A stretch of DNA of 64,000 nucleotides from Aplysia californica (lineage: Eukaryota), in NCBI RefSeq assembly GCF_000002075.1, contig NW_004797392.1:1236306-1300305 (forward strand), written 5' to 3'. This document shows positions 7,101 to 40,100 of this stretch, piece after piece. The position numbers and the translations under genes were made by a program. Position 1 is the first letter of the stretch. Every line of letters starts with the position of its first letter. The notes beneath the pieces were generated by a model that had not been told where the DNA came from, did no database searches, and saw only the letters and a program-made list of their open reading frames with translations.

Positions 7101-10100
7101 CTGTGCTGATAGTGTTTTAGAACCTGAAACTCAGAGTTGTGGGTTATTGGAAGCTGCCTTAGGTAGGTCTGGCTTCTTTTCTTTCCCTCTGTTGATTCTA
7201 CCTGTCTTTTATACTTAATAACTAGTATTGAGTGGATGTGCTTTTCTTACTAAAAAAAACCCAAATTAATTTAAGTGTACTTTGTGGGTGGTTGGCGGGT
7301 GCTCTGGTTGTGGTTGCTTCTTCTTTCCTATCAAACATCTATCGTCCTTTTCTCCCCCTTCTTCTTTTTCATGTTTGTTACTCTCTTGTTACACCTCTAA
7401 TCTTCTGGTGCTCATATGACCTTATGCAGTTGCGAGCGCTGTAAAACCTCTACTAAAACTTTAAACTAAGTGTACTATTGCTGTTTGTCTAGTCCCAAGT
7501 CCCTGTGAGCCCCACTGACTGTTTCCTGCAACACCTGAGCTACCCAGATGAGGAGGATACAGCGGTGGACCTGCGACAGAGTGCAGTGGTCATCATGGCT
7601 CACCTGGACAGACTGGCCAGCCCGTACCTGCCTGTCAGCTCCACACACAAGGTAGGTGTGACACTGTGATGATTTGACCCTTACAGCCCCAATTGTGTAT
7701 ATTTTTCCTCTTGAGTTCTTGCTCCCACAAGTCCAGTCACGTACATTTTTCCCACTAGGGCATTGCATTGGCCACCTCAAACAGTCACATACTTTTACTG
7801 TAATCTGATCTTACTGTAATCATTATCTTTTAAAATTCAGATAAAAGAAGTAAAGATTTTTTTTTTTTTATGTAAAAAAATTGCAGACACAATCAGTATT
7901 GGCTGAGCCTGAAGTGACAAGGATTCTAGCATTACCAGGTCCAGAGGGTAGTGAGGGCTAAAAATAGTCCGGGGTTTAAGGGTTAAAAGATGTGAGGTCT
8001 ACTTGCTTGTTTGTGTTTCCCCTCTTCTGTGCTGTCCACACTCACCCATTCACTCATCCCTCAATATTTGAAACACGTACAGGAACCAAGTACAGGGTGA
8101 TCCAAAAAAAACTTTACAACTTGTTTTCTAAATATCTTCCTCCATACTGAAGTTCTGCGTTTCAGATTTGAGCATAACATTTGAAAGCCAAAAGGAATTT
8201 GTCTGATATGTATTTAAGATAAGTCCATTGAATGGTTTTGCTCTATATAGCGCATTAAAAAAACAACCCATGTTGAACCTTGTCGCCATTTTCATAGTTT
8301 GACGCACCAGTTCGCATTAGCCCTACCACTAAAAGTTGCAACAATCGCGCCATATTGCAAGCTACATCAGTCTAACAAGGCAACAGAAGTCTGCAGATAT
8401 TATTTTTCCAAATTTTGTTTGCCTGCTGAGATCATGGCTACCTTTAGTAAAGAGCAGAGAGCTTTGGTGCCCTCAAGACCTTTGGCGTCATGAGTAGAGA
8501 AGTTCCGTCAGTTTTGATCTATAGCGAATCAGAACTAAAAAAGTTCTTTAAAAAATGACAACTTCAGGTCCGCCATGCGCACCCCTTTAAACGTCACCAG
8601 AGTGCAGATTTCAGAAGCCGAGTCCTATGATACGTCTGTCAGTGGATAAACTGCAGCTAGGACTTTCCTACTCACCAACAGTCTGCATTCTCATGGCATA
8701 TGTTAACTTCGCTAGGCCGAGATGACATGGATCAGAGCATAGCAATGTGTTCAGGATTCCTTGATTGTCTTGCAAAGAGGGATCATTTCCCCGATGACAT
8801 TTGGTTTAGTGCAAAGCCCATTTTCACCCTGCAGGATATGTTAACTTAAAAAAATGCTGTCTATTGGGCACCCCCACTCTATTGTCACTAGAAGCCATTT
8901 CTTAGTGAACATGTACAGTGTATATGGCTTTAAAAACTCATGGTTTAGCAGGTCCTTGTGTTAGGGCGCCAGTGAACATTTCGAGCGATGCGTTAAAAAT
9001 GTGTCGAGTCCAAAGGAGGGAATGTGGAGCATTGCTTCTAGGAATTTCAGAATGAAATCATTAGGTTTTTAAAACTCTGTAAAAGAAATTAAATATTGTT
9101 TAAATATCTCAGGGATGGAAAATTAATGTCAAAGAGAAAATAAATAAAAAGCTCAACTAATCTTTTCACGACTTCCTTTACAAGATTTTTAAGCATTGGT
9201 GAACTTTGCGTTTTTGGGGGCTTTTTTCTTTTAGTCGTTTCCGTTTTCAAAACACATTTCTTCTTCTTGGATTTTATATCAAACAAATTCCTTTTGAATG
9301 AATTATGTCTGTTCCAAATTACAGCATTCTAGAACAATTTTTGCTTGAGATATTCAGAAAAAAAGTTGTAAAGTTTTTTTGGGATCACCCTGTACTTATC
9401 CTTTTGTGCTCAGCTGCCAACTAGTATGTAAAAAATGCATTAAATACGTTTTTTTGTGTCTGAGTACATAATTTCATCTTTGTATTGTGCTGTAGAAAAA
9501 TTATGAACTATCAGGATGGAATATATGAATGATAATGAGAACGAAGCCCATAAGTCAATTGGAGAGATCTTTGCTGCTATTGTGTACTTTGGACGGCCTG
9601 AATTTATAAAAAATCAGAAAAATATCATTATCTTTCCTTTTTTCCCCTCGTATGTTACTCTCGAGTAACACTTCTCATCATCAACATTTTAATGACCTAA
9701 TTGTATTGCAAGTGCTGAAAAACTGTTACCAAAACTAAATAAAGCGGCTTTCACTGCTGTTATTTCAGTCAAACTGCCGGTCAGTCACACAAGATATCAT
9801 CGGCATGGGCTGGCTGTCGTGGGCCAGCACCTCGGGCACACCCAGTCCCACCAGCGGGCCGCACGTGCTGCTGCTGTTTGCCGACCTGGGCGGAGTGCAG
9901 CAGATTGTGTGTGCTGAGCGCTGTCTTCTCACCTTGACACGGACGGGGAAAGTCTACACAATGTTCTACAGCTCTGACACACAGGTACAATCTATGGTGG
10001 GAAAAAGAAATCTGTTATGCTGTTGTTTATCGAGCAGCTCCTGGGCCTTTGTCCACAACCTAATACATTGGATGGTTTTGGGGTTGTTGTTGCTTTTTGG

Positions 10101-13100: not shown

Positions 13101-16100
13101 TGCTTTACACAAATCATTGCACTTTTGCAGTTACTGTGATGTTCTTTGATCTGTCATGTATGTCTATAGGGCTAGACATTAAATGTTGGTATGCAATATT
13201 GAGCATTAACAGGCCCCAGTAATGCCCTCTTCAGTAAAATCCCACTGTTGTCAAATTACTCCTTACTATGCCAGTGCTGGTGGCTGATGATCACTTACAA
13301 GCACATCCCCTTCGTATTTTTTTGTTTAAGTAAGAGTTTTAATGCATCTGCATCACAATAATGTCATATAAGTGCCGAAGATTAAAGGTGCCACAAGAGA
13401 GTAACAAACAAAAAAGAAGGAGGGTAGATAAGAACAATAAATGTTTGATAGGAAAGAAGTAGAAAACTGCACCAGAACACCTGTCAACTGCTCACTCACA
13501 CACCCCCTTTCTGCTTAAATTTGTACAGGGGCAAAGGAGATAACTTCCGGCTGGGCCATGGCTGTGAGGAGCACATCAGACATCCGAAACAGATGGAGGG
13601 TCTGGGGGGTCGGCGAGTACGGAGCTTGGCCATAGGTTCCATGCACTGTGTGGCTGTGACGGAAGAGGGCGAGGTCTACTGCTGGGGCAAAAATGACCAG
13701 GGACAGCTGGGCGACGAAACTCACGCCAACGTGAATGAACCGATATTGGTGCCGGGCCTGGATGGGAAGCACATTGTTGGGGCTTCGTGTGGGCCATCAC
13801 AGGTTAGACTTTTGTGTGTCAGTCAGTTGTCAGTTCTAACAATGGGTCTTATGTTTTTGAATGAATGAAAATTACTTGTTTATTATATTAATAGCTCTCT
13901 AGGTCTTATTGATTTTCTGAATTTTGAAGAATGTGTGTCTTTAGAGTTGTTATGTTTTTGGAGCAATTTCTGGAGGATGAAGATGTGAGGTGGGAGACAA
14001 CAATGTTTCGAAAAGATCAAGCATTAGGGGACTAGATAATGTGAGAGACTTTATGCTATATTTGGGATAGGTGGAAGTTAATCTCTATCTGTTTGTTTCT
14101 GTTTTTCGTCATACCTTTTTTTTCAAAAGATAAGTGACCTTAATTATATTAATGTACTTCAGCATATACTGAGTCTCAAAACTATACCTCACAGAGCTTC
14201 TTTTGGTCCTCGAGCGACCAGTGGAGCGTGGGTTCAAGGATTCCCTTTATCGTGGAGGTTAGCCGCAGCACCCTAGAACAGCTGGAAGAATTGCTGCGTG
14301 AGGTCACAGAAGGCATGGATGGACGCAGCGACTGGCCCCCACCTCAGGACAGAGAATGTATCGCTGTAGTTGCCCTCAACTTGCTCAACCTCCAGGTATT
14401 TTTTTCTAACCTAACAGAATCCTTGCTGTAAAAGAGTTTGTTCTTGTGAAGACGTGATTGTGGCTAACTCAGAGCAATCAAGCCAAATACACGAAAAGCT
14501 TTTTTTTTCTACTCTTTGACAATCTTGCTCTACTGCACCTCGTAACCCACCGATGGCCAGATGGTGCTGCATGAAGGAAGGTCCTATTTCTTGGCCATCT
14601 GGTTTTTGTTTGTCTTCCTCTGAATAGTCAGCCCATATATAAATTGATGCGAAAAAGTTTAAACTCAACGGTGCTCTTCTCATAAACTTTAGTAACAGTT
14701 AAAGTAATTTGTTTATTATCTTTTTGTTTCAGGGAGAAATATTCTTCTTTCTCAGGATATTTACACAATTATGTTGTGAAAGAATTATTTGCTAACCAAA
14801 TAACACTTTTATCATGTTATATTTTCATAATTAAAACTGTATGTTGTGGGTGGTTGGAGGTTGCTCTGGTGTGGTTTGATTCGTCTTTCCTATCAAACAT
14901 CTATCGTCATTATCTCTCCTCCTTTTTTGTGTTTGTTACTCTCTTGTAACACCTCTAATCTTCAGCACTTATATGACCTTATTGTGTTGCAAGTGCCGTA
15001 AAACACTTACTAGAACTATTTAAAAAACTGTATGATTCCACAGCTCCATGCCACCATCTGCCAGTCTGAGGATGTGGAGGCCGTGGGTCTAGGTCAGGGC
15101 AGTCCCTTGGCAGAGAGCCTTAAGCAGCGAGTGGTCAGTCTGGCCTCACACAGCGGGGTCATTGCCACCATCCAGAGGGCAGCTCAGGCCACTCTGCACA
15201 GCGGCTGGTCACTCCTGCTGCCCACACCCGAGGAGAGAGCCAGGGCTTTGTCGTCATTGCTTTCTTCTGGGAGTGAGTTGCAAGAAATTTTGTTTTATAC
15301 TTAATATCAGTTCTAAGAATTATGTTACTGTCGAAATTGGTCCTGAATACCAAGTAAAAAACTGCACCAATATTCTTTTTAAGAAATAAGTGTGATGTCA
15401 ATTTGGTTCATTTTTAACTCTTTAAAGAAAATTTGCTTCTACATTCTTAAGGACTGTGTATTGATATGACTGAATTAAACAAGCATTTGTTTTTCAATTT
15501 CTTCTTTTCTTTATTTGTAGAATTGGGGAAAAGACGATGCTCATTTTTTGAAATCTTCAAGATATATGAGCATGAAGTCCACATCACATTTAATCTTTTT
15601 TGAAGTGCTTTTAAATAATTCAATTTTACTGATGAGAAAAGGCTTTGAATCAAGATATAGATCATCTTTTTTAAAAATGAGAAATACATACTCTATGTAA
15701 AACTCCTTATTTCAACAACATTTCACAAGCGATGATACATTATACCCGCAGGCCGTGATATGACTGTGATGTCCAGTGGTCAGCGGTTCATGACGGACCT
15801 CTTGGTGAGCTCCCTCATGGCTGATGGGGGCCTGGAGACAGCCTTGCACTTGGCCATCAAAGCTGAGGTCAAGGACATGGATGATTCCAAGGTAAATGCA
15901 CCCAAAGACTTTATTTTTTCTATCATTCGGTGTTCTTGGTCAGAGTGAGTATTTGTATTAATATTCAGCGCCTTTTAGAGATGGGTTTTGTTCTGGTGTC
16001 ATTGTAGTTGTATGGAATGCATAATGAATGTTTGTGTGTGTCTGTGTCTCTATGTGTCCTTGTAACCTGCTTCTTTTCTTCGTTAATTTTGACCTTCTCC

Positions 16101-19100
16101 CTTAACCCTTTGGGCCCTGGGCCCCTTACCAGAAATGTTCCCACAGCCAGGACTCCTTGGCATTTTCATTATAAAGGAACTGGTACCTAGAGAAGACTCT
16201 GACATGTGTGTGGGGGCATGTTTCTAGGCCCTCGTAAAGAACCATTAAATGCTTTATCTGCTGGAATTTAGCCTTTACACCACTTTGAGTGCTAGTTCTG
16301 GATCTACATCTAGATCTACCTGTTTTCAGGATACTCTTGTTTCATTCATAGATCTATAACCTTCATCATCACTCAAATCTAGTTCTAGGCCTTCATCAGA
16401 AACTGATTAAAAATCTGTCTCTGTGTAATATTCATCTGATTCAACATTCTAAATTAGAAAAATTCCTGGAAATCTTTTAGCACTTCGGCTACACTAAACA
16501 ATTTCCTACAAGAATGACTTATCCTGGAATTGCAGGTGTCTGGCTGGTTCAGTTTCATATTGAAATGTCTCAAAATTTAGGTTAGCAGGTGTTCAGGTGC
16601 GGTTTGCTACTCCTTTGTTATCAAACATCTTTTATCCTTATCTCTCCTCCTTTATTGTGTTTGTTACTCTCTTGTAACATGTCTAATCTTCAGCACTTAT
16701 ATGACCTAATTGCTTGTGCAGTAAAACTCCTGCTAAAACTAAGCCTTTAACTGGGCACCAGCAGTTGCTGGAGAAGGAAAAGAATGATTTAGAATTTTTC
16801 TGCTTTTTAAAAAATACAACAACACCCCCCCCCCCCCCCCCCCCCTTTCAAATTTGAAATGACAACAGCTTTTTTTTCCTTTTAAAATGTTACCTTTTTG
16901 CGTGCTTTTGCAGGAGAAAGAGAGTGAGATGAAGACAAAGAAAGAGGGAGGAGATGCTGAAAAGGACAAGATTGGAGAGGCAACGAATGCTGTGAAGAGT
17001 GAGACGCCCCTGCTGGATGTCCAGCTGGGAGAGCAAACTGAGGATGGAGAGACCTCTATACCTCTGCTACAACTTATACACCAACTCTTTAGGTTTGTCC
17101 TGAAGGATTTGAACGATCTGTGTGCTTGCCCTGTTACCTCTGGAACGTTTACTGTTGGTCATCTAGATTTTCAATGCTCTTGAAAAATAATGAAATCCAA
17201 GAAATCGGCATTCTCCCTCTGGTTTTTGATTTCTGTCAAATTTTGGGGTTTTCGCCGAACATCTTTTATGTCCATTTAATATCACATTTCTGAGTGGATT
17301 TTACTGGAAAAACATTGATCAAAGGCACTGCAAAAAGAAATACGAAAATTTGCAGTTTCCGGGGACCCTCAAGCTTTAGAAGTCTCCAAATTTGTCGGCC
17401 ATCTTCTTGAAAATATTTACCTCTGATGCCAAGTAGCCGCCTTCAAACATATTCTATGTTTTCGTTATTTTCAGGAACTCGTCAACTCACACTTTGTCCA
17501 AGCTCCAGGAGGAGGCCAAGTGTCGGGGCATGAGGTCACCCGATGGCGACTCCCCGGAAAACTCCCCGTCCCTCGACCTCCTGCTGCAGTTCCAGAGGCT
17601 TCTCATCGCTCGCATTTTCCTCAACAAGTCAACTGACGAGCACCACTCCGTCCATTCACTTCACTCTGTGTCGGGAGAGTCCAAGCCTTGCAAGAACAAA
17701 GAAACTTCTTCACTGCCCGGCAGTGTCTTTCAGGGAGAGACAGGTGATATGGTTGTTCACTTTAATAATGATAATAATAATGATAATAATGATAATAATG
17801 ATAATAATAACAATACCAACAATAATAATGATAATATAACGTCAGGAACACCAACAGCAACAACAACGAGAGCAACAATAATAATGATAATAATAATTAC
17901 ATTTATATAACGCATATCCTTTGATGGTATTTGATTCTGTTTGCTCTAACTTGTTTTTCATGTACATATATATTTCTTAGTCTGCTTGCTTTTGATTATG
18001 CATATGATGATCTGTTTGATGAAATAAATATGGAACAGAGAGGGAGAAGAGAAAGAAAAGACTTGGACAGTGAGAGAAAGAGGAAGAGAATGTTGACCCA
18101 TCATATGAATCCTTGCTGTTGAACAATGTTGTCTTTTACTTTTGATTTATGTTGCAGAAGCTGACGAAAACACAATGTTACTTTTTTTTACATGAAAAAA
18201 ATAAAATGATGGGTGGTTGGCGGGTGTTCTGGTGGGGTTTGCTCCTTCTTTCCGATCAAACACCAATCATCCTTATCTCTCCTCCTTTTTTTTGTGTTTG
18301 TTACTCTCTTGTAATGCCTCTTATCTTCTGCACTTAATGTGACCTAATTGTGTTGCAAGTGCCTTAAACCTCTTACTAAAACATTTTAAAATAGAAATTA
18401 ACTGGTTTTTGTTGCTTTATCTGAACCAGGCTATGAGATGCTGGGTGCTGCGTCTCTGCTGCGCAAATACTGCAGCCTGTTGGTGGGCCATGTGTCCAGT
18501 ATCCTGCCCACAGCAAGCAGTGTTGGAGAGATGAGTGCTCGCAGTTTTGCTGCTGTCACCTCCATACTGAACAGGGATGTTATTGGTAAGTTTTCTTGCC
18601 TTCCCTCCCTTTCTGTTGTTGTTGTTGTTGCTGTTATTGTTGTTACCAGTCCAGCAACAGCTGAGCTCTCACCCTTCTGTCCAGTGCCATTTAGTGATAA
18701 GTGCAGTTTTGCTGCAGTTGCGGTAATGTTCCATAGAGTGTGTTGTCAATGTGAGGTCTCGGGGGAGGGGGGCTCTCTCTTGGTGTATAGGTCCGATGTC
18801 ATTTAGGGCTGCTTAGTGGAACAGGTGATGATCCACTGTCTCACCTTTTCTGTGTCCATACTAACAAGGGCATCACATCGTTCACACTTCCTTTCTGGTG
18901 GTGGGGAGGGGGGGTGTGTGTGCAAAGAATAGCACCTGTCATGGTACTGTGTATTTTAAGAGATGACTTAAGAAAAGAGCCAGTTGGCAGATGGCCAACT
19001 ACCCAACCCAGTAAAGACTCAAAAAGTTACCAAAACATGAGATTGAAGTTCACTTTAATTGTCTTCTTTAGTCTGATCTTGTCATCTTCTTTCTTCTTTT

Positions 19101-22100
19101 TTAACCAAGCCATTTTTTTTTCACAAAGGGTCTACTCTTCTGTACTTGCTTGGAAAGATTGATTGAGGAATCGACCAAAAGAGTGCTGTCGAATCTGCTC
19201 TAATGACCACGAGTCCAAGACATTCACTTGTACAAACCTCTACTTTGCACTTTTTCCTATTGTGTTCCTTCTATATTACAACGAGACTGTCCAAGACGAC
19301 CACCTATCTAAGTTGACTACTTTTCTGCTCGACAGTCCTGGAGTTTTATTTTAAAAGACCGTATAATCTAGTTTTGTAAAATGTTTAGGAGAGCCAAAGA
19401 AACGCTTCTTTTCCTTTCAACAGTCAGTCTCTTTGAATATTTTCAAAGCACTTTCTCTACCTTATTTATTAAGATATTGATGCCAGGTTAAGGAAGAAAT
19501 GTGCTTCGTGTTTTAAACTCAGGTGGAATAGATCTTCCAATTTTTTTTTGGAAAACTGGATTTACTTTCTTTTAAAATAAAAGTCCAGAATGGGTGGGCA
19601 TCTTGGACAAGTTCAACTGCATTTGGCTACCTCAGAATTACAAAGTTCTATCTGCTCAGTACCCAGTTTTTGAGAACATGTCAAGCTTTTTCGAATGCAT
19701 TTCTTTGAATATCTTGATAACGACTCCAAATAATCTTGCCATTTTGTTAGAGAAGATAGAACATTTTGGTTTCTGAGCTCATGATCTCAGTTACTCAAAA
19801 CGGCCAGAAATGTCAGATAGAACTTTGTAATTCTGAGGTAGCGATTTGTTTTCATAACATTTTCTGATGAGATACCAGCTTCTTACAATACAGAAAGGGT
19901 TTTATTTAATGTCTCCTGCATTTTTTTTTCTTTACTCATCCTCAGGCATTTTGCTGCCAGAAATGGTGACCTGTCTGGTGCTGCTGCAGCTGCGATGTCC
20001 CCAGGTCATGCAAGCATCGAGGGCGGCCCAGCTGTTGTCCCAGGTGCTGGACGAACTGGACTACTTCAACCACCTGGCACCGGGTGCAGAGAGAGAGGAC
20101 ACGGAGGACTTGGCCTGGCCGGGGGTCTGGAGTGAGTCATCAGTTTTTCTTGTCTTTTAGTTTGACAAGTGCTTTCCACCTTATGTACGTGACGGTAAAG
20201 TGAGAGAGTAAGTAAGTTTGTCAAGTGCTCTCCACCTTATGTACCTGATGGTATAGTGAGAGAGTAAGTTTGTCAAGTGCTCTCTGCCTTATGTACCTGA
20301 CGGTATAGTGAGAGAGTAAGTTTGTCAAGTGCTCTCCGCCTTATGTACCTGACGGTATAGTGAGAGAGTAAGTTTGTCAAGTGCTCTCTGCCTTAAGTAC
20401 CTGATGGTATAGTGAGAGAGTAAGTTGGTCAAGTTCTGTCCACCTTATGTACCTGATTGTATTGGGAGAGAGTAAGTAAGTTTGTCAAGTGGCAAAAGCT
20501 TCAAATTTATTTATCACTAGGGTGTGTCCTTGAGCAAAAGATATTAGGTTTGGCTCAAAGAAAGCAATGTTGGGCATAGGTGTGTCTGTTGTATGTTTAA
20601 TATATTGATAATGCCGTAAAACTTATATTCAAAATGAATCACTTGTAATATATTTATGCTAAATGATTTTGTATAATCTGTATGCCTTCTTGCTTCCTAT
20701 TAGGTGCTAAGCACAACTCCTTAATGGAATGCTGCTTCAAATTGTGTCCCTCACAGGTTACAGTTTGGAGAAGTACAGCATGCGTGGTTGTGAAGACAGT
20801 CAGATGATCCGCAAAGCTGACCTGGAGAACCACAACAAAGACGGTGGCCTCTGGGTGGTGATCCACGGCAAAGTGTACGACCTTCAAGACTTCCGTGACC
20901 AGGCACCCTGTGGCGCCGACACATTCCAGGAGTGGGCAGGTACATATCTTGGTCATGTTTTTGCTTGCTGCAAAAAAAAAATATGTCCAGAATAGGAAAT
21001 TTGCAAGATTTTGAACACTTAATCCTGTGACATGACTTGTAGAAGATTTTTAGGTCAGGAAGAAGAATAACTCAGGTCTTATGTGCCCTACTTTTATACT
21101 AGACTAGCTGATAGTTGGATGACACAACTGATAGTTCCTGCCTCTTTACTGTACTTTTATTGTTTCTGCTTTATTCCCGTTTTTCCCCCCAACAACATTA
21201 TGACAATTACCATGTTTATGAGGGTTTTTTTCTAAGCTCATATTCTTAGTCATAAACACCAGCAACGTCCTTATTGCTTTTCAATATGCCATGCACATAG
21301 ACAATCAGCTTCCAAAGGGGGACATTTCTCGTTCATGCACAGTAGAATTGTAAATGGATTGATTCACCATGTCACTCTCAACAGGGCACTGCTGCTTTTT
21401 CTTTCCTAATCCTTGCTATTGTCATTTTCCTCTACTTCTTTTGTATATTTGTCACACTCTTGTGACCTGCTATTTCTGGAGTGCCTTGATAGTCGAAGCA
21501 GACTTTGTGCTGTTGAAGCTAGAGAGATGAGCAGTCGAAGTCTGATTCCCTGTAAAGACTTCTCTGTTGACACCCGCCCCTTGCCGCTCATATGACCTTA
21601 TGCAGTTGTGAGCGCCGTAAAACCCTCTCCCCAAAAAAAAAAAGACAATCAGCGTCAATAAGTATGCCATCTATTGTCTTCCGCTCAGGCCGCGACGCAT
21701 CACTTGCATTTGAGTCTGCACATCACTCAGACGATGCCAGAGAGATGATGAGTTGTTTTTATGTGGGACAGTACATTGATGTAAGTTTCAAAAGTCTTTC
21801 TCATGTTTACATTTTTGTGTGAATTTTATTTTATTTTTTCAAGTTTCAGAATCACAATTTTATACTGACATCTCAAGGTGAATTGGAGAAAACATACACT
21901 TGTCAGGCTTTTCATTTTGCATAGACTATTTAGTTTATGTTTCTAGTCCACATTTTTCATTTATCATCATGTTTTTAATTATGATTTGTTGCTATGTTAG
22001 TATTCCTGGTATTTCCTTTCTTCCTAGTATTGCTTTTCTGAAGAGCTTGAGGAGTACTTTCTTAGGGACTTCTTTTTTTATCTGCTATCTATCCTTTTTC

Positions 22101-25100: not shown

Positions 25101-28100
25101 TGTGCAGGTTCTGTCTCCCAAAAGTTGCTAAAAACTTAGTTGATTTTCTTAACTTCTCAGACACGGACATGCTCAAAGATTGTTTTACTCATAATTGCGA
25201 ATTCTTATGTTTCTTTGCTCACCTAATTCCACTCTTTGGCTGACACTACAAATCTACATACTAGTTTCCAGATGTGTGCAGATATTTTTCCTTTTAAATA
25301 ATATTTTAGTCTCTATAAATTTGCCTTTAATGCCTGGCTGTGCAACTCAAAACAAATGGAACTTTCTTTTTCCTATAAAGTTTTATGATGCAGTCTGCTC
25401 CTTCTTTTTTCCCCTGTTACTATTTTGTCTTTGTGTTATCCATGGCAAAATGTTACTCCTGTCATGTCCACTCCCTCCTCCCAAAATCCCTACCTGTGTG
25501 GGAGATTGGTGGGTGCTCTTTCCGTGTTATCAGTAACAAAATCTGTACCTGACTGAACAAGGTGTATGTAGTTGGTTAATCGGTGCTCTGGTGTGGTTTG
25601 CTCTTACTTTTTTATCAAATATTTGTCCTCCTTATCTCTCCTCCTTTTCTTTGTATATTATTCTCTATTAACACCTAATCTTTGGCATTACAAGACCTAT
25701 TTGTGTGGTATATGCCGGTGGCACTTCCATGACCAAAGCTGAGTCGATAGTGCCGTAAAACACCTACGCAAACAAACAAGCAAATGCTGTAGTACTCTAA
25801 CGAAAACTAAAAACTTACATTACTATTTAGAAGCACAGCATGAGTGGCTTAATTTATAAGTCACTGCCATATAGAACATGAAGTGTGGGTGGTTGGCCGG
25901 TGGTCTGGTGTGGTTTGCTTCTTCTTTCCTTTCAAACATCTATCGTCTTTATCTCTCCTTCTTCTTTTTTATGTTTGTTACTCTCTTGTAACACCTAATC
26001 TTCCGGCGCTCATATGACCTTATGCAGTTGTGAGCATTGTAAAACCTCTTCTAAAACTAAAAACTAAAGAACATTAAATTCATTACCAACTGCATCTTGT
26101 TGACCTGTTTTCTGTGGCAGACTGTTGATGGCGGTGCTGCTGAAGCACTGTGACCTGGGCTATGTGGTGCTGGGCCTGGTGGAGCACGGCCAGGGGGAGG
26201 GCGCCGGCAAACTGACCATGCCCAAAGCCGTGGCGGAACTGTGCCGTGTTATCTGCCAGACCAAGCGGTCTCTCATAAAGGTGGGTAACAGAAGTATACT
26301 TTTATCTATTAGCAAGCACTTACTTAGCCTTTAATAAACACACGCAAATTCATCGAGTTGAATAACAAGCAAACACATATTTATTAAGGAAAATAATGAG
26401 CTGTCTCTCTTAAAGGTGGGTAACAAAGTATACATTTATCTATTAACAAGCGCACACTTAGCCTTTAATAAATACACACATATTCATTAAGTTGAATAAC
26501 AAGCAAACACATATTTATTAAGGAGAATAATAAGCATACACTTATCCCTTATTTAGTGCACACATGTCCTTTAACAAGCTCACACATATCCATTAAGGTG
26601 AATAAGATAGACAGCATTGGTGGCCAACTGAGGAAAGTTTTTTGTACAAGCCTAATGTAATTTGAGAGCTGTTTTAGCATGTTATCTTTTTCTTTGGAGG
26701 CAAAGCTTCTTGAACACTTAATGAAGAGCATTGCACTTTGTGGTTGATCATAAAAACAAATTTTTTATACAACGGATGTGACCAATGTTGCTGATACATA
26801 TATGAATATGCCATCATGCTTTTACAAAGATCATCATAATTAGCGCTCATATGTCCTTATGCAGTTTTGAGCGCCGTAAAACCTTACTAAAACTAAATGA
26901 TCATCATTAATGTTCTATCTTTAATTTGATGATCTTAGATAGGAGCTTTGTCTTAGAGTGTTTGACTTTATTTCTTGTGTACTTGGAGTTTGAAGTTATA
27001 GTTCCAGCCTGGAGAGGGGGTTCTCGTGGTCTAGAGGTTACGGTGTTTGCCTCTCATTCCATAGGTCGTGGGTTCGAATCCGGATAGCGACAGAAATTTT
27101 TTTACTGTAAAATGTTCTCCTTTCACATCCTTTCCTGCTCTATAGCAATGTTCTGTCGTCTGCTTTCATCTCCACATTCTGCTCCCATCCCTTCACCTCC
27201 TTGCCCCCTCCTCAAGGCTTCTGACTCTTTCTGCAGCCTTTCTCCTGGTACTCCTTGGATCTTTTTTGCTGGTTTCTTTCAGCCACACCCCTAGTCTTGT
27301 GGTAGGAAAGATCTACACCTAGCCTTCTCAGACAAGGGAGAAAATTCTCGGAGGTCTCATGTGCAAGTTGTGCATGTTAAAGATCCCTTGGTGGTCCAAA
27401 ATCGATAAGAGTAGGCTTCTGGCGCCACGCTGGCAAAATTCAGAATTTCCTACCAATTGAAAATTTTTAATGTTTCCCGCGCGCTCATATGACCTTATGC
27501 AGTTGGGAGCACACTGAAACACACTTACCCTACCGGCCAGGAATTTTCTTTGACAGTAATTTGTTTTTTGTTAGCTGCAAAAAAAAAATTTATTCTTCTC
27601 AGTGGGGTTGTATTACAGTTGTGTTGTGCAAGAATTCTTTACCTACTAGATATATTCTTACCTTGTAATTGTTTCTGTTTCAGGCTCATCAAGACCAGGG
27701 CAGGTCTTACAAGGAGGTGTGTGCCCCTGTCATTGAGAGGTGTCTGTTTTTAATCAACGAGTTGCGACCAGCCTCTGGGGATCAAATGAATATGTTCACT
27801 CGGTCCAAGCTACTTAAATCAATGCCGCGATGGAGGGAAGTCATTTCTCGCATCGTCGACGACAAGAAGAGATCAAAGGGTGAGTTTCGTTAGGGTTTTT
27901 GTATACAATGGGGCACGGATAACTCAAATGCATAGAGCGTTGCCAAATGTGTTAGACACATTCATAACTCTGGTCAGTCAATAAGAAAAAACATTTTAAG
28001 ATATTCATCGGGGAATGGCTTGCACAAGTTATATATGATTTTGAGTTGTTCGTGTTCGTGTTATTTGTGCGCGGCTGTGGTTAAAGGCTTCCTGGTCTGT

Positions 28101-31100
28101 ATGCACACATAGAGGGCTTACTGCAGCATAGTCTTTATGTCATATGTTCTGCTTGGGGTTATTTTTCAACTTTTGTTTTAAACAAGAACAAAATGTAAGT
28201 ATGGCACAGAACTTATGTGGGTTTTCTTTTTCTATCATGCTAACATGGTCTACTAGCTTGTAGAATGATGGAACACTCCAGGAAACCTGATTTTCCTTTT
28301 CCGTTTTCTTTGTATGGCAGGACTTTCATCAACTCAAGATGAAGATGATGAAGACAGTGGAGGTGACAAGGAAAATGATGAGGACAACGAATCCCTTCTG
28401 AGTGAGGCTGCTGGTGGTGTTGATGACGCCAAGGATGATGAAGGCAAAGAAGAAACCTCCCAGGTGAAGGAGGAGGAAGACAACAGCGAGGATGAAGGGG
28501 AGGGCAGCGAGGAGGCTGTCAGCACTGCTTCTGAAGGCGAGACACAGCAAAGTGGCGGGAAGAGCCCTGGGGCTCTGAATCTGGACGACATCAAGATTGA
28601 GGAAAAGGAGGAAGGGGAGAATGAGGATGCAGCGGAGACAAAGAGCATGTCGCAAGACAGAACAGTATGTTTATGTGATGTTTTTGTAATTTAAAAAAAA
28701 AGGAAATAACCTGTTTGTAAAGAAATCTTTTTCCACTTGTATAATATAGCTTGTTTAACACTTTCCACCCCCGCACAGCGCAGAGTGTGCAACACTTATC
28801 CCCACGAACTAAGATACAGAGGCGATACACGCTATATCGCGCTGTCACTGATTCTTGTCCCATGGGGAAAACGGGCAGCTTCTATCCATCACCGATTGGC
28901 ATACCGTGGGGGCAAGGTGTTAAAGAAGAACCGTGGATTTTGTGATGTTTGTCTGAGAAGCATAGTTTCTAAACTTGTATCTCCGCTGAATGACAGGTAC
29001 AAAGGTGAAGCATTTTGTGTTACAAAAAGGTGAAAGGTCAACTGTGCAATCAGAGGAAACGGACTAAGAGGTCTTTAACCCTCTTTGACATTTTTTCCCC
29101 TTACTCATAAAAAAAAGTTGTGCTCTTCCTTTTTAGTTGTATTTGCATTTTTGTGTTATAAATGATATGGAAAATTATTCGCCAGTTCTCTTCTTCCTCC
29201 TCCCTCCTTCTCTCCCTTTGTACCTCTCTCCTTCCCTCCCTTGGTCTCTCTTTTACACTCATACACACACACACATACACACACACACACACACACACAT
29301 ATTCTCATACTCGCGCTCATCCAACCTGACTCCATTTGCCTCTCTCCCCCTTTTCCAGAGCGACCCATGGGAAGAGGTAGTCAAGGTGGTGACCAACTCC
29401 CAGAAGATGCGGTGGCTGCGGCAAAGACTGACGGGCTCCCGGGCAGAGCTGAGCTTGGTCAGCAAGATTGTGGAGTTTGTCTTGTTTGAACACCCTGTGG
29501 ACATTGAGAAGCTCCGCAGATCTCTCCACCATCAGGTGAGTGAGATTATTTGTCTGTGATGTTCCCATTCAATCTTCAACAGTGGGTGGTTGGCGAGTGC
29601 CCTGGTGTGGTTTGCTCCTTCTTCCTTATCGATCAAACTTCTATCGTCCTTTATCTCTCCTTTTTTGTGTTGTTTTTTTTTGCTATCTTGTAACGCCTCT
29701 AAAATATTCAGCACATATTCAACCTACTTGTGTCGCAAGTGCCATGAAAAGCTTACTGCAACCAATGATAGTACATAACAAGATGGGTCACTTCTCTCTT
29801 TGAGCCAATTAAAAAAGTGTCCTCAAAATTCGGTGGCGCCCTCTTCACAAAAGCGCACTCTTTGCGAACAGAGTTACCCTACTTGAGTTTTTTAAAATCA
29901 AAGTGAAACTAGCAAGTTTTGGGATAAATTTCGGAAGAACGCTTTTTTAAAATGGTTACGCTGACAAAAAACCTCTTCCGGAGGAAAGGGTGATGGTTTT
30001 CTTTGTTTAATTTGACTTTAGAATGAAAGGCGAGAGGTCATTAAAATTTTTAAAAACTAAAACTCCGCACTGAACGTACCCGAACTGCTGATGAACAGCA
30101 GTCTATCTGCGCACGCAAGGAGGTGCTATTCCTATTCTTTTTCTGGAAAAACGAAAGAGAGCTTCAAAACAGACTGCAGCGCCATCTGAAGCAAGGAGCA
30201 TACTTCCTGCGGACACTTTTTTGGCTGAGTGGCCCATCTTGTTATGTACTATCATTGCTGCAACTAATCTAAACTTAACTTTTCTCTCGTCCTTCTTTCT
30301 TTGTGTTGTTATGATCCTGTCACACATCTAATTTTTCGCACTTATATGACGTTGTTGTGTTACAAGTGCTGTAAAACTCTTTTTAAAACAAAGTAATCTT
30401 CTGCAGCAAGATGTACACCTCTGCAGACTTTTTTTTTCTAGTGGCTCGGTCTTCTAATATTCTTTGCTTGGTGTGTGATGTTCTTTATTTTACTTTTTTG
30501 ATGTGAGTGGTTGGCGAGTGCTCTGGTTTGGTTTGCTTCTTCTTTCCTATCAAAGATCCATCGTCCTTATCTCCCCTTCTTCTTTTTTATGTTTGCTACT
30601 CTCTTGTGACACCTGTAATCTCCTGGCTCTCATATGACCTTATGCCGTTGCGAGTGCCGTAAAACCTCTACTAAAACTAAAAAACAAAACTTTTTTGATA
30701 ACATCACCAGGTGGCACGAGCCGAGCGGAGGTTGCAAGGAATCCAGAACATGCTGACGCTGGTCCACAAGGAACATCTGGTCCCCTCAGTCAAGTACAGC
30801 ATACTCTGTGGCTGGCAGGGACTACTCTCTGTGGGCACAAAGCACCAGTGAGTTCTCTTGTTACATGTGGTGAAGGCTTCAGTTTGCTTGTTCCAGAGGC
30901 TGCTTTAAAAAAATTTTCTACCGTGACAAAGTCAGGACTTTTATTTGGTAGGGATAATTTTAATGCAGAGAAATTCATTTAACCGAAAAACATAGTGATT
31001 TATTGGCCTGTGTTTTAGGGTTGTTGTTGTTTTTTTTGGGTTTTTTTCTTTTGTTTTTATTTTTTAAACTATAAAGTAACCATATATATATATATGAATA

Positions 31101-34100: not shown

Positions 34101-37100
34101 ATTTCCGTATTTCATTTTAAAATTAAATTCCTTACCCTTGCATGATATTGGCAGAATTTAAGTCTGGGGCCTTTGCATTGTGAGGATATTTCATTTTTTT
34201 GCAATAGTCTCAATTTATTTGAAAGCAAACTTCATGAATAGCACTGTAATATGCATTGTTCCATCTCCCTAGACTATAGTTTTTTTATATAAGTTTTCTA
34301 CTTTTTGTATCCTGTGACTATCGCACTTGTAATGAATCTGACCCAGGTATGCTTAAAAATGCTGAATACACGGAACGTATAGATGATTTGTATTCTGTGA
34401 CTATCGCACTTGTAACAAGTTTAAACCTCGTGTGCCTGAAAATATTGAGTGCGAGGAAAGAATTGATGATGAGCTCTCTGACAGGTAGCATTTATGCCAT
34501 ACACCTGCAACTGGAGTGCCCTCTGTAACATTCTGCCATGCATGTACCGTTAAAAAGAATAATAATGTCTTACACTGAGCAGCTGATTTGTAAATGGACC
34601 ATCCTCCAAAATGTATGAGCTCTGATTTTTACTGTGATTTTTGCTTGTCTTTTTTTCTGTCCTTGCCTGAATGTGCTTGCTGTCTATAGGAGGAACGAAG
34701 TTACCATTATATTATATTTGTGCTTCTCCTTAAGTTACCCAGCTAGTGGATTGTGGTGACTCTGGTGTCGTCTGCTTCTCTTCTACTTCTTTTACTTCTT
34801 TTTGGTGCTTCTGTTGGTGTAATCTTGTTATTCCAATATGAGAGGGTGGTTGGCGGATGCTATGGTGTGGTTTGCTCCTTCTTTTCTATCAAACATCTGT
34901 CATCTTTACCTCTCCTCCTTCTTTTTTATGTTTGTGACTCTCTTGTAATACATCTAATCTTCGGCACTTATATGACCTTATTGTGTTGCAAGTGCCGTAA
35001 AACTCTTACTCAAACTAAAAAATCTCTAATTTTTGGCACGTAAATGACCTTGTTGTTGTGCAAGTGCCATAAAACCTTTACCTGTGTACTAAAACACAAA
35101 AATCTGTGCCAGGACGGTCCTCCGCCCAGCCTGGGCAACGTGATCGGTGAGCTGGGCGAGGACGGCTGGATCCGCGTGCAGTGGGACACGGGCAGCACCA
35201 ACAGCTACCGAATGGGCAAGGAGGGAAAGTACGACCTCAAGCTGGCACAGATGCCAGAGCTCACAGACAACGAGGATGACGAGGAGGAGGATGAGTCACA
35301 AAGTGGTCAGTGGATGCATCTATTTGTATCATCTGTCATTTCTGTAGACGTGAACTTTGATAGATCTGTTTTTATCATCTCTCATTTGTGTAGATGTAGA
35401 CTTTGATATCTGGAGGTGTTTCAATTTTTCTATAATATTAGATATTAACACTAGATAGCAACATGTGTCCACTTACATGGATAGTAAGTGGTGGCAGGGG
35501 CAGAGAAATACACTCTGAGATCCTTATGAAGAAAAAAAGCATCTCTTATAAGGGTCAGTTGGCTTAGGAAACAGGAAAGATGTCAAACTGTGCGCCCTGC
35601 AGAGCATATATACTGGGCCCTCCTATATCCCTTCACAGGACCCAAAGTCATGTCTCTTACTCAACTCCCCTCTCTATCCCCCAAGTCCCTTACACTGTCT
35701 CTCGTTTGGAAATGATAAGACCTTTTTTTGTTACTATACCCTCTGAACATTTTAATTGACGTGTAAGTTTGTCGTTTGCTTAGTGTTAGACGCCGCCAAA
35801 CGCCACTTTGAAAAATGACATATGAGAGTCTTACACTGAGTAGTCGATCTGACATCATCTTGACTTCACTGCAAGTTCAGGCTTGTACAGCATGGAGTAT
35901 TCTTTGAACGAGTATTCTTTGGACGTTCATTAGGACAATAAAACCTAGGTTGTAACCTGTTGGTTTGCATCTGAGCATGTGGAAGTGAACAGCACTTACA
36001 TATTTCTCCTTCAGGTCCTTACTTCTACTTTGCCTGTACTTGCTTCCCCTTTCTCATCGCTCAGTACTGGCTACCACCTTATCTGAAAATGTTAGATGTA
36101 AGCTATGGATTACAGTAAATGATTTTGCATTTTGAGATTGAGATTGAGCTTAGAGGCTGCATACAATAGACTACATCACTTATATTTAATTGAATGGAAT
36201 TATTTGCCTTGGGTTGTTGACGGGTGCACTGGTGTGGCGTGCTCATTCTTTTTATCAAACATCTATTGTCCTTATCTCTCCTCCTTATTTTTTTGTGTTT
36301 GTTACTCTCTTGTAACACCTCTAATCTTCATCATTTATATAACCTTATTGTGTTGCAAGTGCCGTAAAACACTTACTTTAAAAAACACATCTGTTGGTCG
36401 GCGTTCATATAACCTAATTGTGTTGCAAGTGCCATAATACACTTACTTAAACAACAAAAAACAGTTGCCGGTAATGTTTTTATAAGAGATTTGTTTGTAA
36501 CAAAGCTGTGTCCTTGTTTGGTCTCAGAGAAGACCCACCCAGAGAACAAACACCCGACCAGTCTGATTCGTCGCTCCACCGTGGGCTTCCTCAAAGCCCT
36601 GTCACTGTGTGCTGGTGTTCACGCTGAGAACGCTCAGCCTGAGGCTGTGGCTGCTCTATGTGGGCTGATGCTCAGTATTGTGGATGCAGGATGCAACTAT
36701 GGACCAAGTGAGTGTGGAAGTGGGAGCCCGAGTTTGATATTAAATCTGTTTGCTCTATATTTTTGTCGTAGCTTTGTTTGCAGCTACTGCAAGACTAGAC
36801 TCCATTTTTTGTTTATGTGAAAGTGTTTGGTATAAATTTCCAGTACTTTTTCAAGCATTGTGTCTTCATTGTGTAATGCTAATTGCTTTCTTCAGTTTTT
36901 ATTCAAGTGATATAACCATAAGTGGTACTAAAGAAATGACATGCGAAATCTCTCTTTCCTGAACTCAGCATTTGCCATATTTCTACAATCTACAATCTAT
37001 TCACTAATTACTTCTTTATACACACAAGTAGAGTTTGAGTTGTTAAGTACTTTCTGTACTCTATCATATGAGAAATGGACATCATTTTAAAGTTTGCGTT

Positions 37101-40100
37101 TCTAGGAATGAACATAAAGGAAAGAAGCATGAAATGTTGATTTTAAACGAGTTTTCTTACTCAGATACGAACTCGGCCTCAGCCCACATTGCCAGCCAAC
37201 AACACAGCCAGTGGTGTAGCCTGGGCTTCATCCGTAGCCTGGCCACCAGCCCCGTCATGTGTCGCGCCCTCTCCTCCCCGCGCTGGCTGGGCCTGCTGCT
37301 GCGCATCCTGGAGGAGGACCACGGCTCCAAGTACTCCAAGAACATCTACAGACAGGTGGGCTTTTGCAACAGTTTTACATTGTTATGCATTACTGTTATG
37401 CATTTCTTTATTTTTCTAATTTTTTTTTTTGGTCCAAAATTTTGCATGTCAATGGAAAGTGTTCATAACTGGATTATTTTTAAGTTTGGGGCGATATGCA
37501 AGCTACAATCAAAGACTGTATTATGTAGTGGTTTGTTGATTCAGCATTGAACATATTATTATGTGTAACATCCCTGTCCTGAGTTAAGCTTTTTTCCATT
37601 TTGTCTTAAGAAAGAACTTCATTGACCAAACTATATTCTTTTCAGATCCTGATTTTAAAGCTGCTTCGAGCAGTGCTACCTTCTTGGGACCACTACATGG
37701 ATAGAAGCCGAGTGACAAGTCTTGTGGAGCGATTGTTCTCCATCTTGGGCAGTGTCCTCATCGGCTGTGCCACTGACATGACACTGACGTCAACTCGTAA
37801 GTTGAACATTTACACGAGGTCATTTGTGGTGTAGGAGTAAGGGGCTTGGCCATCGCATGCAAGATACACGAGTTCGGTTCTTGAGGCGAGAAAATTTTTA
37901 GAGTGTATCTCGTGGTTTTTCTACTGGGATATAGTATCGCTCTCAGCCCAGGTTAGCCCAATAGGTAGGGTCGAAGCCCATCTCCTAAGTGATCTGACTT
38001 GTGCTGATGTGGGGCATAAAAACGGAAAAAACATTTTTTTCAATTGTATTTATTTAGCACAGGGATGAGCTTTTTTTTTTCTTTGTTTCTTTCTTTTTTT
38101 TCTTTTTTTTGTGCATTGCTGGCTTGGATAATGCTTGAATGTAATATAAACAATAATCTTATTAAAGAGCTCTGAGACTGAAAAAAAAAGAAGTTTATTC
38201 CCTATGATAAGTCGGGGTGCTTTTAGTCTCGTATAAATGAGGAAAAGTTGAAATTTGAATTTGGCCTGCTGAATGTTGCAATCTTTAGGTTTTCCTTTTC
38301 TCTGCACATGATCTCTCCGTGAATGATTGATGATGATTACTATTTGATAGGTCCTATTTCTTGTCCTCAATATTGATGTATCATGGTCTCTTTTACATTA
38401 CTCTCTTCTTTGCTGCACTTGAACTATTTTGTGTCCTATATGAATTTGTAGCATTAGTACAGATCACATATGTTTTATGGCGCTCTCATATAACCTTATG
38501 CAGTTGTAAGCGCCGTAAAACTCATACTAAAACATATGTTTTATTTCCATTACTATCTTAATGTCTTATCGTGTCTAATCTTGCCTTGTTGGCAGTTGAT
38601 GAGGGCTCGGGTGTGGTTTGCTCCTTCTTTTCTTTAGAATCTCTTGTTTTATTCTCTCCTCCTTTTCTTTGTATGTTACTCTCTTGTAACACCTAATCTT
38701 TGGTTGGCACTTTTATGACCTATTTGTGTTGCAAGTGCTGTAAAACTTTCAAAAACTAAACTGACCTCAACTTTTAACCCCCCCCCCAGGGCAGTGCTAC
38801 TGATTGAAGTGTCTTTAGGCCATTCTTAAAGGGGGGATATTAACATGTTCTGCACAGTAGAATTGTAAATGGACTGATTTTTCAATGTCATGCTTGTACT
38901 GTGCAAGAACTACTTAAGAGGAACTGCTGCTTTTTCTTTCCTCATCCTTACTATCGTCACTTTTTCCTCCACTTCTTTTGTATGTTTGTCACGCTTGTGA
39001 ACTGCTATTTCCGGGGTGCCTTGTTAGACTTTGTGCTGTTGAGGCTAGAGAGGTGAGCAGAGTAAGCCTGATTCCCCGTTTGGACTTCTCTGTTGACATC
39101 CACCCCTTGGCGCTCATATGACCTTATACAGTTGCGAGCGCCGTAAAACCTTACTAAGTGGGCAGTTGTCGGGTGCTCTAGTGTGGTTTGCTTTTTCTTT
39201 CCTATCAAACATCTTTATCTCCCCTCCTTCTTTTTCGTATTTGTTACTCTCTTGTAACACCTACTCTTCGGCACTTTTATGACCTTATTGTGTTACAAGT
39301 GCCGTAAAACACTTACTAAAACAAACAAACCTTACTAAAACAAACATTACCTTTTAATCCTGTTTAGTGGAGGCTGGCCAGGAGAAGAAGCACAGTGTCC
39401 CGGTGAGCATGACTGCCACCTACACCAGCACTATGGCGGAGGAAGTCATCGCTCTGATTCGCCGACTGCACACACTGCCTGTGTGGAACGCTTCCATCAA
39501 CCGCTACATCGCAGGACAGCTGCCCAGCATTGTGTCGCTCCTGGCAGAGAGGAGAACCCACCATGTATGTTATGCTGCTCGTTATGATACGGTGTTGTTC
39601 AGTTCTACGCTCTATGTGAGGGCACTCTGTTCACTCAGTTGATATAATTTTGGATTACAGAGCAAATGTGCCTGTTTGGAATTCCAGACTGGGCGTTCTT
39701 GAACTTCTCTTTTTTGGTCGCGTTTTACTCAATTCAACTGATCTTGTGGGTGGTTGGCGGGTGCTCTGGTGTGGTTTGCTTCTCCTTTCCTTTGAAACAA
39801 CTATCCTCCTTATCTCTCCTCCTTGTTTGGGACTTCCTACTTCCTCCTAACACCTCTAATTTTCTGTTCTTTTATGATCTAAATGTGTTGCAAGTGGCAT
39901 AAAACTATTACTGAAACAGAAACAACTTATCTTGACTGTTTTCACCTTCCAGATTGAACTAGAGGAAGAGAGTAACCAGACGGCGCTCATGATGGCGGTG
40001 CTGTCGGTCATTGGTGGGGTGGACTGTCGTCTACGCCTGGGCTCCCTGGTGAGACATGAAGAGCTGGGTCTGGGAACAGTCTGCAGGATCACGGCGAAGG

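Follow-up and report, generated by a model that had tools for sequence, protein, structure and literature searches.

A retroposon with a branch-point-like tail is over-represented just upstream of 3' splice sites in a HERC2-like gene of Aplysia californica

Introduction

How does a mobile element come to stand, in intron after intron, within a few dozen nucleotides of the next exon? The question is raised by a 64,000-nucleotide stretch of the Aplysia californica genome (assembly GCF_000002075.1, contig NW_004797392.1, positions 1,236,306 to 1,300,305 of the forward strand; hereafter the window), which covers most of a plus-strand HERC2-like gene with RCC1-repeat exons; in the introns of this gene copies of a retroposon of about 185 nt, falling into subfamilies A and B, recur. 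A reading made from the letters of the window (the sequence-only reading) had proposed that this element repeatedly inserts just before acceptors, and that it either supplies a replacement branch point with its tail or is actively targeted to exon flanks.

In human and mouse, a strong depletion of mobile elements extends to ~100 bp from exons; the elements that do lie within 20 bp favor donors, and disease-causing insertions fall in these exon-flanking depleted zones (PMC3088655). The last 50-100 nt of an intron are the zone that is least tolerant in mammals, where insertions cause disease, and the Aplysia element reverses this rule; its accumulation before acceptors of an essential, conserved gene that is correctly spliced is unexpected.

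Results and Discussion

Host gene and exon map

A one-exon query retrieved full-length relatives of 3500-4700 residues. Exons were mapped by tblastn of full-length homologues together with a dynamic programme for splice sites and phase, the terms of which were homologue matches, reading phase, coding bias, expected residue gaps and self-trained splice matrices; a version lacking the length and coding terms misplaced two of six acceptors by 44-92 nt and was replaced. With hand correction of seven weak splice sites, the map comprises 82 exons from 996 to 81742 (window coordinates, extended by flanking sequence). A spliced RNA contig of 6592 nt (run X9) spans six of them, confirming the exon starts at 35113, 36528, 37646, 39368 and 39953 (GT-AG alignment ambiguity allowed for) and setting the start at 37165, the sole one of the six that the exon programme had missed.

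Copies accumulate before HERC2 acceptors

Direct-repeat searching and an nhmmer profile made from eleven copies identified 46 copies of the element in the window, 41 on the plus strand and 5 on the minus strand; for the whole HERC2 gene, including the part beyond the window, the totals are 49 sense and 6 antisense copies. The excess of these copies on the acceptor side is well beyond chance in HERC2, and it is replicated modestly elsewhere. Thirteen of the 49 sense copy ends lie within 50 nt of an acceptor where 3.4 are expected (P about 2.5e-5), and 22 lie within 100 nt where 6.6 are expected, a count that none of 200,000 simulations reached (P below 5e-6). Sense copy starts, on the donor side, are distributed as by chance, with 2 within 50 nt and 6 within 100 nt against the same expectations of 3.4 and 6.6. 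The acceptor is the nearer splice site for 40 of the 49 sense copies (P=9e-6), and the asymmetry is retained when it is counted per intron (22 of 28, P=0.004) or when adjacent copies are merged into blocks (29 of 37, P=7.5e-4); 13 and 21 of the 37 blocks end within 50 and 100 nt of an acceptor, respectively, compared with 2.9 and 5.7 expected (P below 5e-6). Among the six antisense HERC2 copies, three place their tails at 18, 24 and 62 nt from a donor.

The copies concerned are listed below; exon numbers in brackets are those of the sequence-only reading, from which our own numbering differs by minus one from about exon 25 onward, and TSD denotes target-site duplication.

757..934, plus strand: full-length subfamily B copy, its end 61 nt before exon 996, the first one mapped (exon 1)
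7282..7466, plus strand: full-length subfamily A copy, ending 26 nt before exon 7493 (exon 7), with TACTAAA 37 nt before that exon; TSD TAAGTGTACT at 7272-7281 and 7467-7476
9625..9740, plus strand: 5'-truncated copy, ending 28 nt before exon 9769 (exon 8)
14844..15022, plus strand: full-length subfamily B copy, ending 21 nt before exon 15044 (exon 14); TSD AAAACTGTATG at 14833 and 15024, its end 7 nt before the exon
18209..18384, plus strand: full-length copy, ending 45 nt before exon 18430 (exon 18)
21564..21642, plus strand: 3' portion of a longer related family, its tail an A-run, 46 nt short of exon 21689 (exon 21)
25882..26065, plus strand: full-length young subfamily A copy, 91% to its nearest relatives, ending 55 nt before exon 26121 (exon 26)
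30501..30685, plus strand: full-length young subfamily A copy, ending 25 nt before exon 30711 (exon 30); TSD ACTTTTTTG, its end 11 nt before the exon
34840..35099, plus strand: full-length subfamily B copy (34840-35022) with a 3' fragment (35022-35099) in its tail, ending 13 nt before RNA-confirmed exon 35113 (exon 34), with TACTAAA 21 nt before it
36210..36457, plus strand: full-length copy and 3' fragment, ending 70 nt before RNA-confirmed exon 36528 (exon 35)
39078..39329, plus strand: full-length copy (39156-39329; TSD CCTTACTAA) that splits an older tail fragment (39078-39155) and ends 38 nt before RNA-confirmed exon 39368 (exon 38), which two element tails therefore precede
39745..39924, plus strand: full-length copy, ending 28 nt before RNA-confirmed exon 39953 (exon 39); TSD matching in 11 of 12 letters
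54741..54921, plus strand: full-length subfamily B copy, ending 79 nt before exon 55001 (exon 56)
56542..56724, plus strand: full-length subfamily B copy, ending 94 nt before exon 56819 (exon 58)
57224..57314, plus strand: partial copy, ending 29 nt before exon 57344 (exon 59)
59335..59427, plus strand: 3' fragment, ending 54 nt before exon 59482 (exon 61)
60405..60484, plus strand: 3' fragment, ending 82 nt before exon 60567 (exon 62)
40914..40986, minus strand: antisense copy, its tail repeats (GTTTAGTTTAG on the plus strand) starting at intron position +12 after donor 40895
62690..62867, minus strand: full-length copy in antisense, with tail repeats that start at intron position +19 after donor 62665

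All 17 acceptors that had been named as having an element end nearby do have one, at distances of 13-94 nt, and the TSD-bounded copies claimed before exons 7, 14, 30, 38 and 39 are each present, the last with the imperfect duplication noted above. The expectation that copy ends would exceed chance near acceptors was likewise borne out across HERC2 by the 50-nt counts.

Geometry of insertion

For the nine acceptor-near copies whose TSDs are clear, the first nick maps 15-42 nt upstream of the exon (median 21) and the duplicated target stops 3-29 nt short of it. This last distance is just 3-11 nt for the copies at 14844, 30501 and 35022, as well as for two beyond the window (77282 and 81327) where the duplication is the pyrimidine tract itself. 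At exon 30 the former pyrimidine run, ttctttatttt, was left directly 5' of copy 30501, as had been read from the sequence. Among sense copies with intact TSDs, 8-9 of 13-14 stand within 55 nt of an acceptor.

TSDs of 9-15 nt were found at 53 copies, and their sequence differs from site to site. The targets share a weak preference, TTTT/AAAAC, resembling that of L1-type endonucleases, rather than one conserved sequence; this motif predicts just a 1.1-1.5-fold enrichment near acceptors and was rejected as the main cause of the excess. The GC profile beside copies shows just a slight, uninformative downstream excess.

Older copies of the element are themselves among the targets: copy 39156 lies in the tail fragment 39078-39155, copy 35022 in that of 34840, and copy 11643 also in an older tail, while an old tail-like run stands 25 nt 5' of the target of copy 7282. 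Similarly, 6-7 of the 29 youngest copies examined genome-wide are inside other family copies, in the body or the tail (L002, L009, L013, L015, L022, L024). These cases would fit an alternative in which new copies prefer A-rich resident tails (TT/AAAA-type), so that a few early chance insertions into HERC2 seeded the rest and the pattern is specific to this gene. We consider this improbable as the explanation of the excess, which survives both the merging of blocks (13 of 37 against 2.9 expected) and the per-intron count (22 of 28); moreover, the targets at 14844, 30501, 77282 and 81327 are ordinary intron sequence, and the asymmetry recurs in other genes (see below). As a separate observation, the neighbors of young copies almost always share the orientation of the central copy.

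The tail as a candidate branch point

Subfamily A copies have the tail CTCTACTAAAACTAAAA and subfamily B copies CTCTTACTAAAAC, in agreement with the sequence-only reading, and the tail motif matches the branch-point consensus in six of seven letters. Of the 13 acceptors that have an element tail within 50 nt, 10 have their best branch-point-like heptamer (between -14 and -50) in that tail, and in six of those ten it is TACTAAA; heptamer scores at the tail-bearing acceptors exceed those at the other 60 acceptors (P=0.003). At many acceptors the sole good motif comes from the element. The RNA contig is correctly spliced at 35113, 36528, 39368 and 39953, four acceptors with a tail 13-70 nt upstream, and it contains no exonised element sequence. 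In three raw poly(A)+ runs no coverage of HERC2 exons was found, the reads deriving only from repeat copies elsewhere; accordingly, apparent read joints such as 36329 to 39108 were rejected as splicing, since they stem from reads of other family copies.

At the acceptors separated from the duplication by just 3-11 nt, the canonical branch-point window consists wholly of element sequence. Given this geometry, it is very likely that the element tail supplies the branch point in several introns, these being candidate branch points identified by position. To this extent the proposal of a replacement branch point stands, together with the correct splicing of four acceptors; the part of it that makes the motif an adaptation is weaker, in that TACTAAA may serve the element's own needs, with the branch point then being a side effect.

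Could the resemblance to a branch point be coincidental throughout, TACTAAA being a poly(A)-signal variant or a module recognised by reverse transcriptase, and the introns using other branch points, either distant ones upstream or ones inside the duplicated target? In mollusc LP-SINEs the ACTAAA that precedes the tail repeats has been interpreted as a variant of the poly(A) signal (PMC4758252), and poly(A)+ reads of the Aplysia element pass into long A-runs right after CTCTACTAAA, on both strands. In addition, tails distant from exons keep the motif equally well, and at 18430, 21689 and 39953 a better heptamer is found outside the tail. We nonetheless regard this possibility as quite unlikely, since in the introns with the shortest distances the whole of -14 to -50 is element sequence. 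The native branch point would there be some 200 nt from the acceptor, and branch points so distant are rare in animals.

Age of the copies and replication outside HERC2

Among the long copies, those near acceptors show less divergence than those farther away, with median identities to their nearest relatives of 86.4% and 80.9%, respectively (P=0.047, rho -0.42), and the six least-diverged copies all lie within 90 nt of an exon. Acceptor-near copies are therefore not relics, and a reading of the excess as retention of old copies was rejected, their TSDs being intact as well. Nor was there support for a "conveyor belt", with fresh insertions displacing older copies upstream: in 4 of 9 introns it is the proximal copy that is youngest, where 4.0 are expected, and the age order of stacked copies gives 8 concordant and 7 discordant pairs.

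Replication was sought in the rest of a 264-kb stretch around the window and in the 1.5-kb flanks of 29 young copies, using an exon predictor trained on HERC2, the false-call rate of which at score 20 is about one per 80 kb per strand. Outside HERC2, a predicted exon was found within 100 nt on the tail side in 16 of 134 cases and on the head side in 3 of 97 (P=0.016). Twelve of the sixteen tail-side exons are on the same strand as the copy, so that the tail faces an acceptor, and four are on the opposite strand, so that it faces a donor. When only same-strand predicted exons in the 183 kb around HERC2 are taken, the counts are small and nearly equal (tail 4, head 3). Among the 29 youngest copies, an exon lies within 100 nt on the tail side in three cases and on the head side in none; two of these exons are real as judged by translation, one of them, at a distance of 51 nt, encoding a dynein heavy chain and the other, at 90 nt, a spectrin repeat.

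The main and serious rival to a bias at insertion is a filter by selection, in which insertion is nearly uniform, tails that happen to land at branch-point distance are neutral or, by bringing a strong branch point, slightly beneficial, and other intronic copies are slightly harmful and lost more often, a very large population then skewing the fixed copies towards acceptors. The tail is well suited to such a role, as it agrees with the branch-point consensus in six of seven letters and scores above the native motifs of other HERC2 introns. Sense bias appears stronger among fixed copies (49:6 in HERC2) than among the youngest copies near recognisable exons (~9:4), an indication that members of this family are indeed filtered once inserted, and just 2 of ~9 young sense genic copies have an acceptor within 100 nt. 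The age data point the other way, the copies near acceptors being younger rather than older, and the youngest copies (3 of 29, compared with ~2% of the genome) already fit a roughly 4-fold excess. Dozens of sense copies also persist far from exons, for example 29 in the 50 kb upstream as well as others in mid-intron, so copies in mid-intron are not strongly harmful; and the antisense tails that face donors gain nothing from a branch point. Taken together, these results lead us to favor insertion bias over selection, the latter being possible but, in our judgement, on the unlikely side. The comparison of young with old copies that the sequence-only reading had suggested thus leans to aiming, and its alternative of targeting to exon flanks is favored by young, TSD-intact, less diverged copies near acceptors and by antisense tails at donors, with the reservation that aiming and selection are not cleanly separable.

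A proposed insertion preference tolerated by splicing

The explanation towards which we tentatively lean is that the element inserts preferentially into the exposed zone before acceptors, and that splicing tolerates it there thanks to a tail able to act as a branch point. The element spreads by target-primed reverse transcription, and in exon-dense genes the first nick would fall preferentially in the last 15-45 nt of introns, from the branch point to the pyrimidine tract, a zone which in other animals is a nucleosome-poor valley beside the exon nucleosome; the copy would therefore land with its tail against the exon. Such insertions would normally break splicing by moving the branch point ~190 nt away. 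The copies seen here would have been tolerated, and would have gone to fixation, by virtue of the near-consensus UACUAAA in their tails, which is suitably spaced from the AG, with the duplicated target restoring the pyrimidine tract. On this view the bias would arise at insertion rather than through later selection, and the tail would be the branch point actually used. Chromatin access may be the cause of the bias: human acceptors have a predicted valley of nucleosome occupancy ~25 bp upstream (PMC2875036), which matches the nick positions measured here; this suggestion is carried over from another animal. The benefit of a branch point cannot explain antisense tails that face donors; a start of reverse transcription near exon edges can.

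A stronger version, about which we are rather doubtful, is that the machinery of integration senses exon edges, by way of chromatin or a bound factor, and starts reverse transcription 15-45 nt away with the tail towards the exon, the tail being a portable branch point, the splice-signal zone a safe niche, and native branch points having been replaced in many introns of this genome.

Several points weigh against the insertion preference that we favor. Most of the statistics come from one gene, and replication used predicted exons in 93 kb and 183 kb; the nucleosome argument is borrowed from human; sense copies are not in excess beside donors, a flank that would be expected to be fairly open too; and the antisense sample consists of six copies. 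In introns with several copies, the one nearest the acceptor is the youngest no more often than expected (the 4 of 9 given above, against 4.0). Single introns could use a distant upstream branch point or one within the duplicated target, and weak selection in a large marine population could give a 4-fold skew even if insertion were unbiased.

The locus offers a natural experiment on branch-point choice, in which dozens of introns have had the native site moved ~190 nt away and the same sequence put in its place. A bias that arises at insertion would amount to a preference for exon edges in a LINE (long interspersed element)-driven element, and germ-line chromatin could be read from its insertion sites; if selection is the true cause, weak splicing benefits would have been selected in a large marine population.

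Class and structure of the element

The 3' module consists, in order, of a 7-8-bp hairpin, GTAAAAC, CTCT(T)ACTAAAAC and CTAAA-like repeats, as in the following example.

41108..41168, plus strand: 3' module with 8-bp hairpin, then GTAAAAC, CTCTACTAAAAC and CTAAA-like repeats

The hairpin arms are GGCGCTC/GAGCGCC in subfamily A and GGCACTT/AAGTGCC in subfamily B, which amounts to two compensatory changes, and compared with shuffled sequence the hairpins of both subfamilies fold better, at z about -2.4 and -2.6. RNAalifold returned no structure from the gappy tail alignment, and the stem pairs were then counted directly. An ACTAAA hexamer, resembling a poly(A) signal as in LP-SINEs, directly precedes the tail repeats. 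Many copies are 3' fragments or 5'-truncated. A first look at the genome (927-Mb assembly, 4332 contigs) gave at least 5852 candidate copies, and 138 copies lie within the 264 kb around the window.

A head of the Pol III type (tRNA, 5S or 7SL) had no Rfam match in the window at the gathering score, an Rfam search with one copy at E up to 10 returned nothing relevant, and ARAGORN found no tRNA-like sequence in the window. A classical short interspersed element (SINE) with a head derived from a small RNA was ruled out on these Rfam and ARAGORN results. By its sequence features the element is a LINE-dependent, non-autonomous retroposon and thus a SINE in the broad sense, with a build closest to that of mollusc elements with tandem-repeat tails; it is possibly an LP-SINE (PMC4758252). 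As a kind of element it is ordinary; what sets it apart is its distribution, together with the likely large-scale replacement of branch points.

Hundreds of poly(A)+ reads (runs X21-X23) carry the 3' module (window 39108-39151), and the family, or transcripts containing it, is abundant in poly(A)+ RNA. A longer related family at 21385-21642 and 38920-39155 shares the element's middle and 3' module and has ~100 extra internal letters; its copies are 78-88% alike and one ends in a plain A-run. Beside one young copy (L017, ~1770-1830 in coordinates oriented by the element) there is a tRNA-like stretch, GGTCGTGGGTTCGAATCCC, which may be a tRNA gene or the head of a tRNA-derived SINE.

Comparison with known systems

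In the literature we found no description of a SINE that is enriched before acceptors or that donates branch points in bulk. Introner elements are transposons that give rise to new introns, for which they bring splice signals of their own. They resemble the Aplysia element in being mobile DNA that brings part of the splicing signal and is thereby able to live in genes; however, an introner is a whole intron inserted into an exon, whereas the element is part of a pre-existing intron and contributes at most the branch point. Its copies fill 180 nt of introns of 350-2400 nt, and the donors and acceptors are host sequence. Antisense Alu elements are exonised by way of their poly-U and a cryptic AG, which creates new exons. 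Alu exonisation (see also PMC2533698) is similar in that a SINE contributes a component of the 3' splice site. Alu acts in antisense and yields new exons, while our element stands in sense before an existing exon and the RNA contig shows no exonisation. Ty1 and Ty3, and TRE of Dictyostelium, integrate upstream of Pol III genes by reading chromatin or bound proteins rather than DNA sequence. In common with these the element has a fixed short distance and a polarity relative to a landmark together with little target-sequence specificity; unlike them, its landmark would be an exon edge, the preference is ~4-fold, and the case is a statistical one.

Closest in position are the SINEs that cause disease in mammals, for example the intronic SINE in canine FAM161A (PMC3976383), which likewise inserted by target-primed reverse transcription into the zone from branch point to pyrimidine tract, with a TSD and usually an A-rich tail. 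Mammalian SINEs in the acceptor zone cause exon skipping and are purged, whereas the Aplysia element shows a ~4-fold excess before acceptors and is fixed in a conserved gene that is correctly spliced. Closest in build are the LP-SINEs (Matetovici et al. 2016, PMC4758252), which are also short, TSD-flanked, free of a small-RNA head and equipped with 3' tandem repeats preceded by ACTAAA. Both are presumably mobilised by LINEs through a shared 3' module, and the definition of LP-SINEs further includes a 5' part of ~70 nt homologous to a LINE 5' UTR (PMC4758252). The words "intron" and "orientation" do not occur in the text of that paper (PMC4758252).

Further features of the region

The orientation of copies tracks the local gene over the window and 100 kb on either side. 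Besides the 49 sense and 6 antisense copies in HERC2, the 50 kb that precede the first mapped exon have counts by orientation of 29 and 3; orientation is mostly minus at +90 to +130 kb, where the predicted exons are minus too, and plus again at +130 to +150 kb.

One HERC2 exon was probably missed between 22980 and 24779, where ~37 homologue residues have no matching exon; an open GC-rich frame at 24197-24375 is a candidate for it. Tandem arrays occupy HERC2 introns at 11030-11247 (42-nt units, ~5 copies) and at 20151-20477 (52-nt units, ~6 copies). Finally, a second plus-strand repeat is present at 1298-1522 and 23729-23927, with an open frame in both copies that reads ...CVLGKGTL...NGY..., and is probably another short interspersed family.

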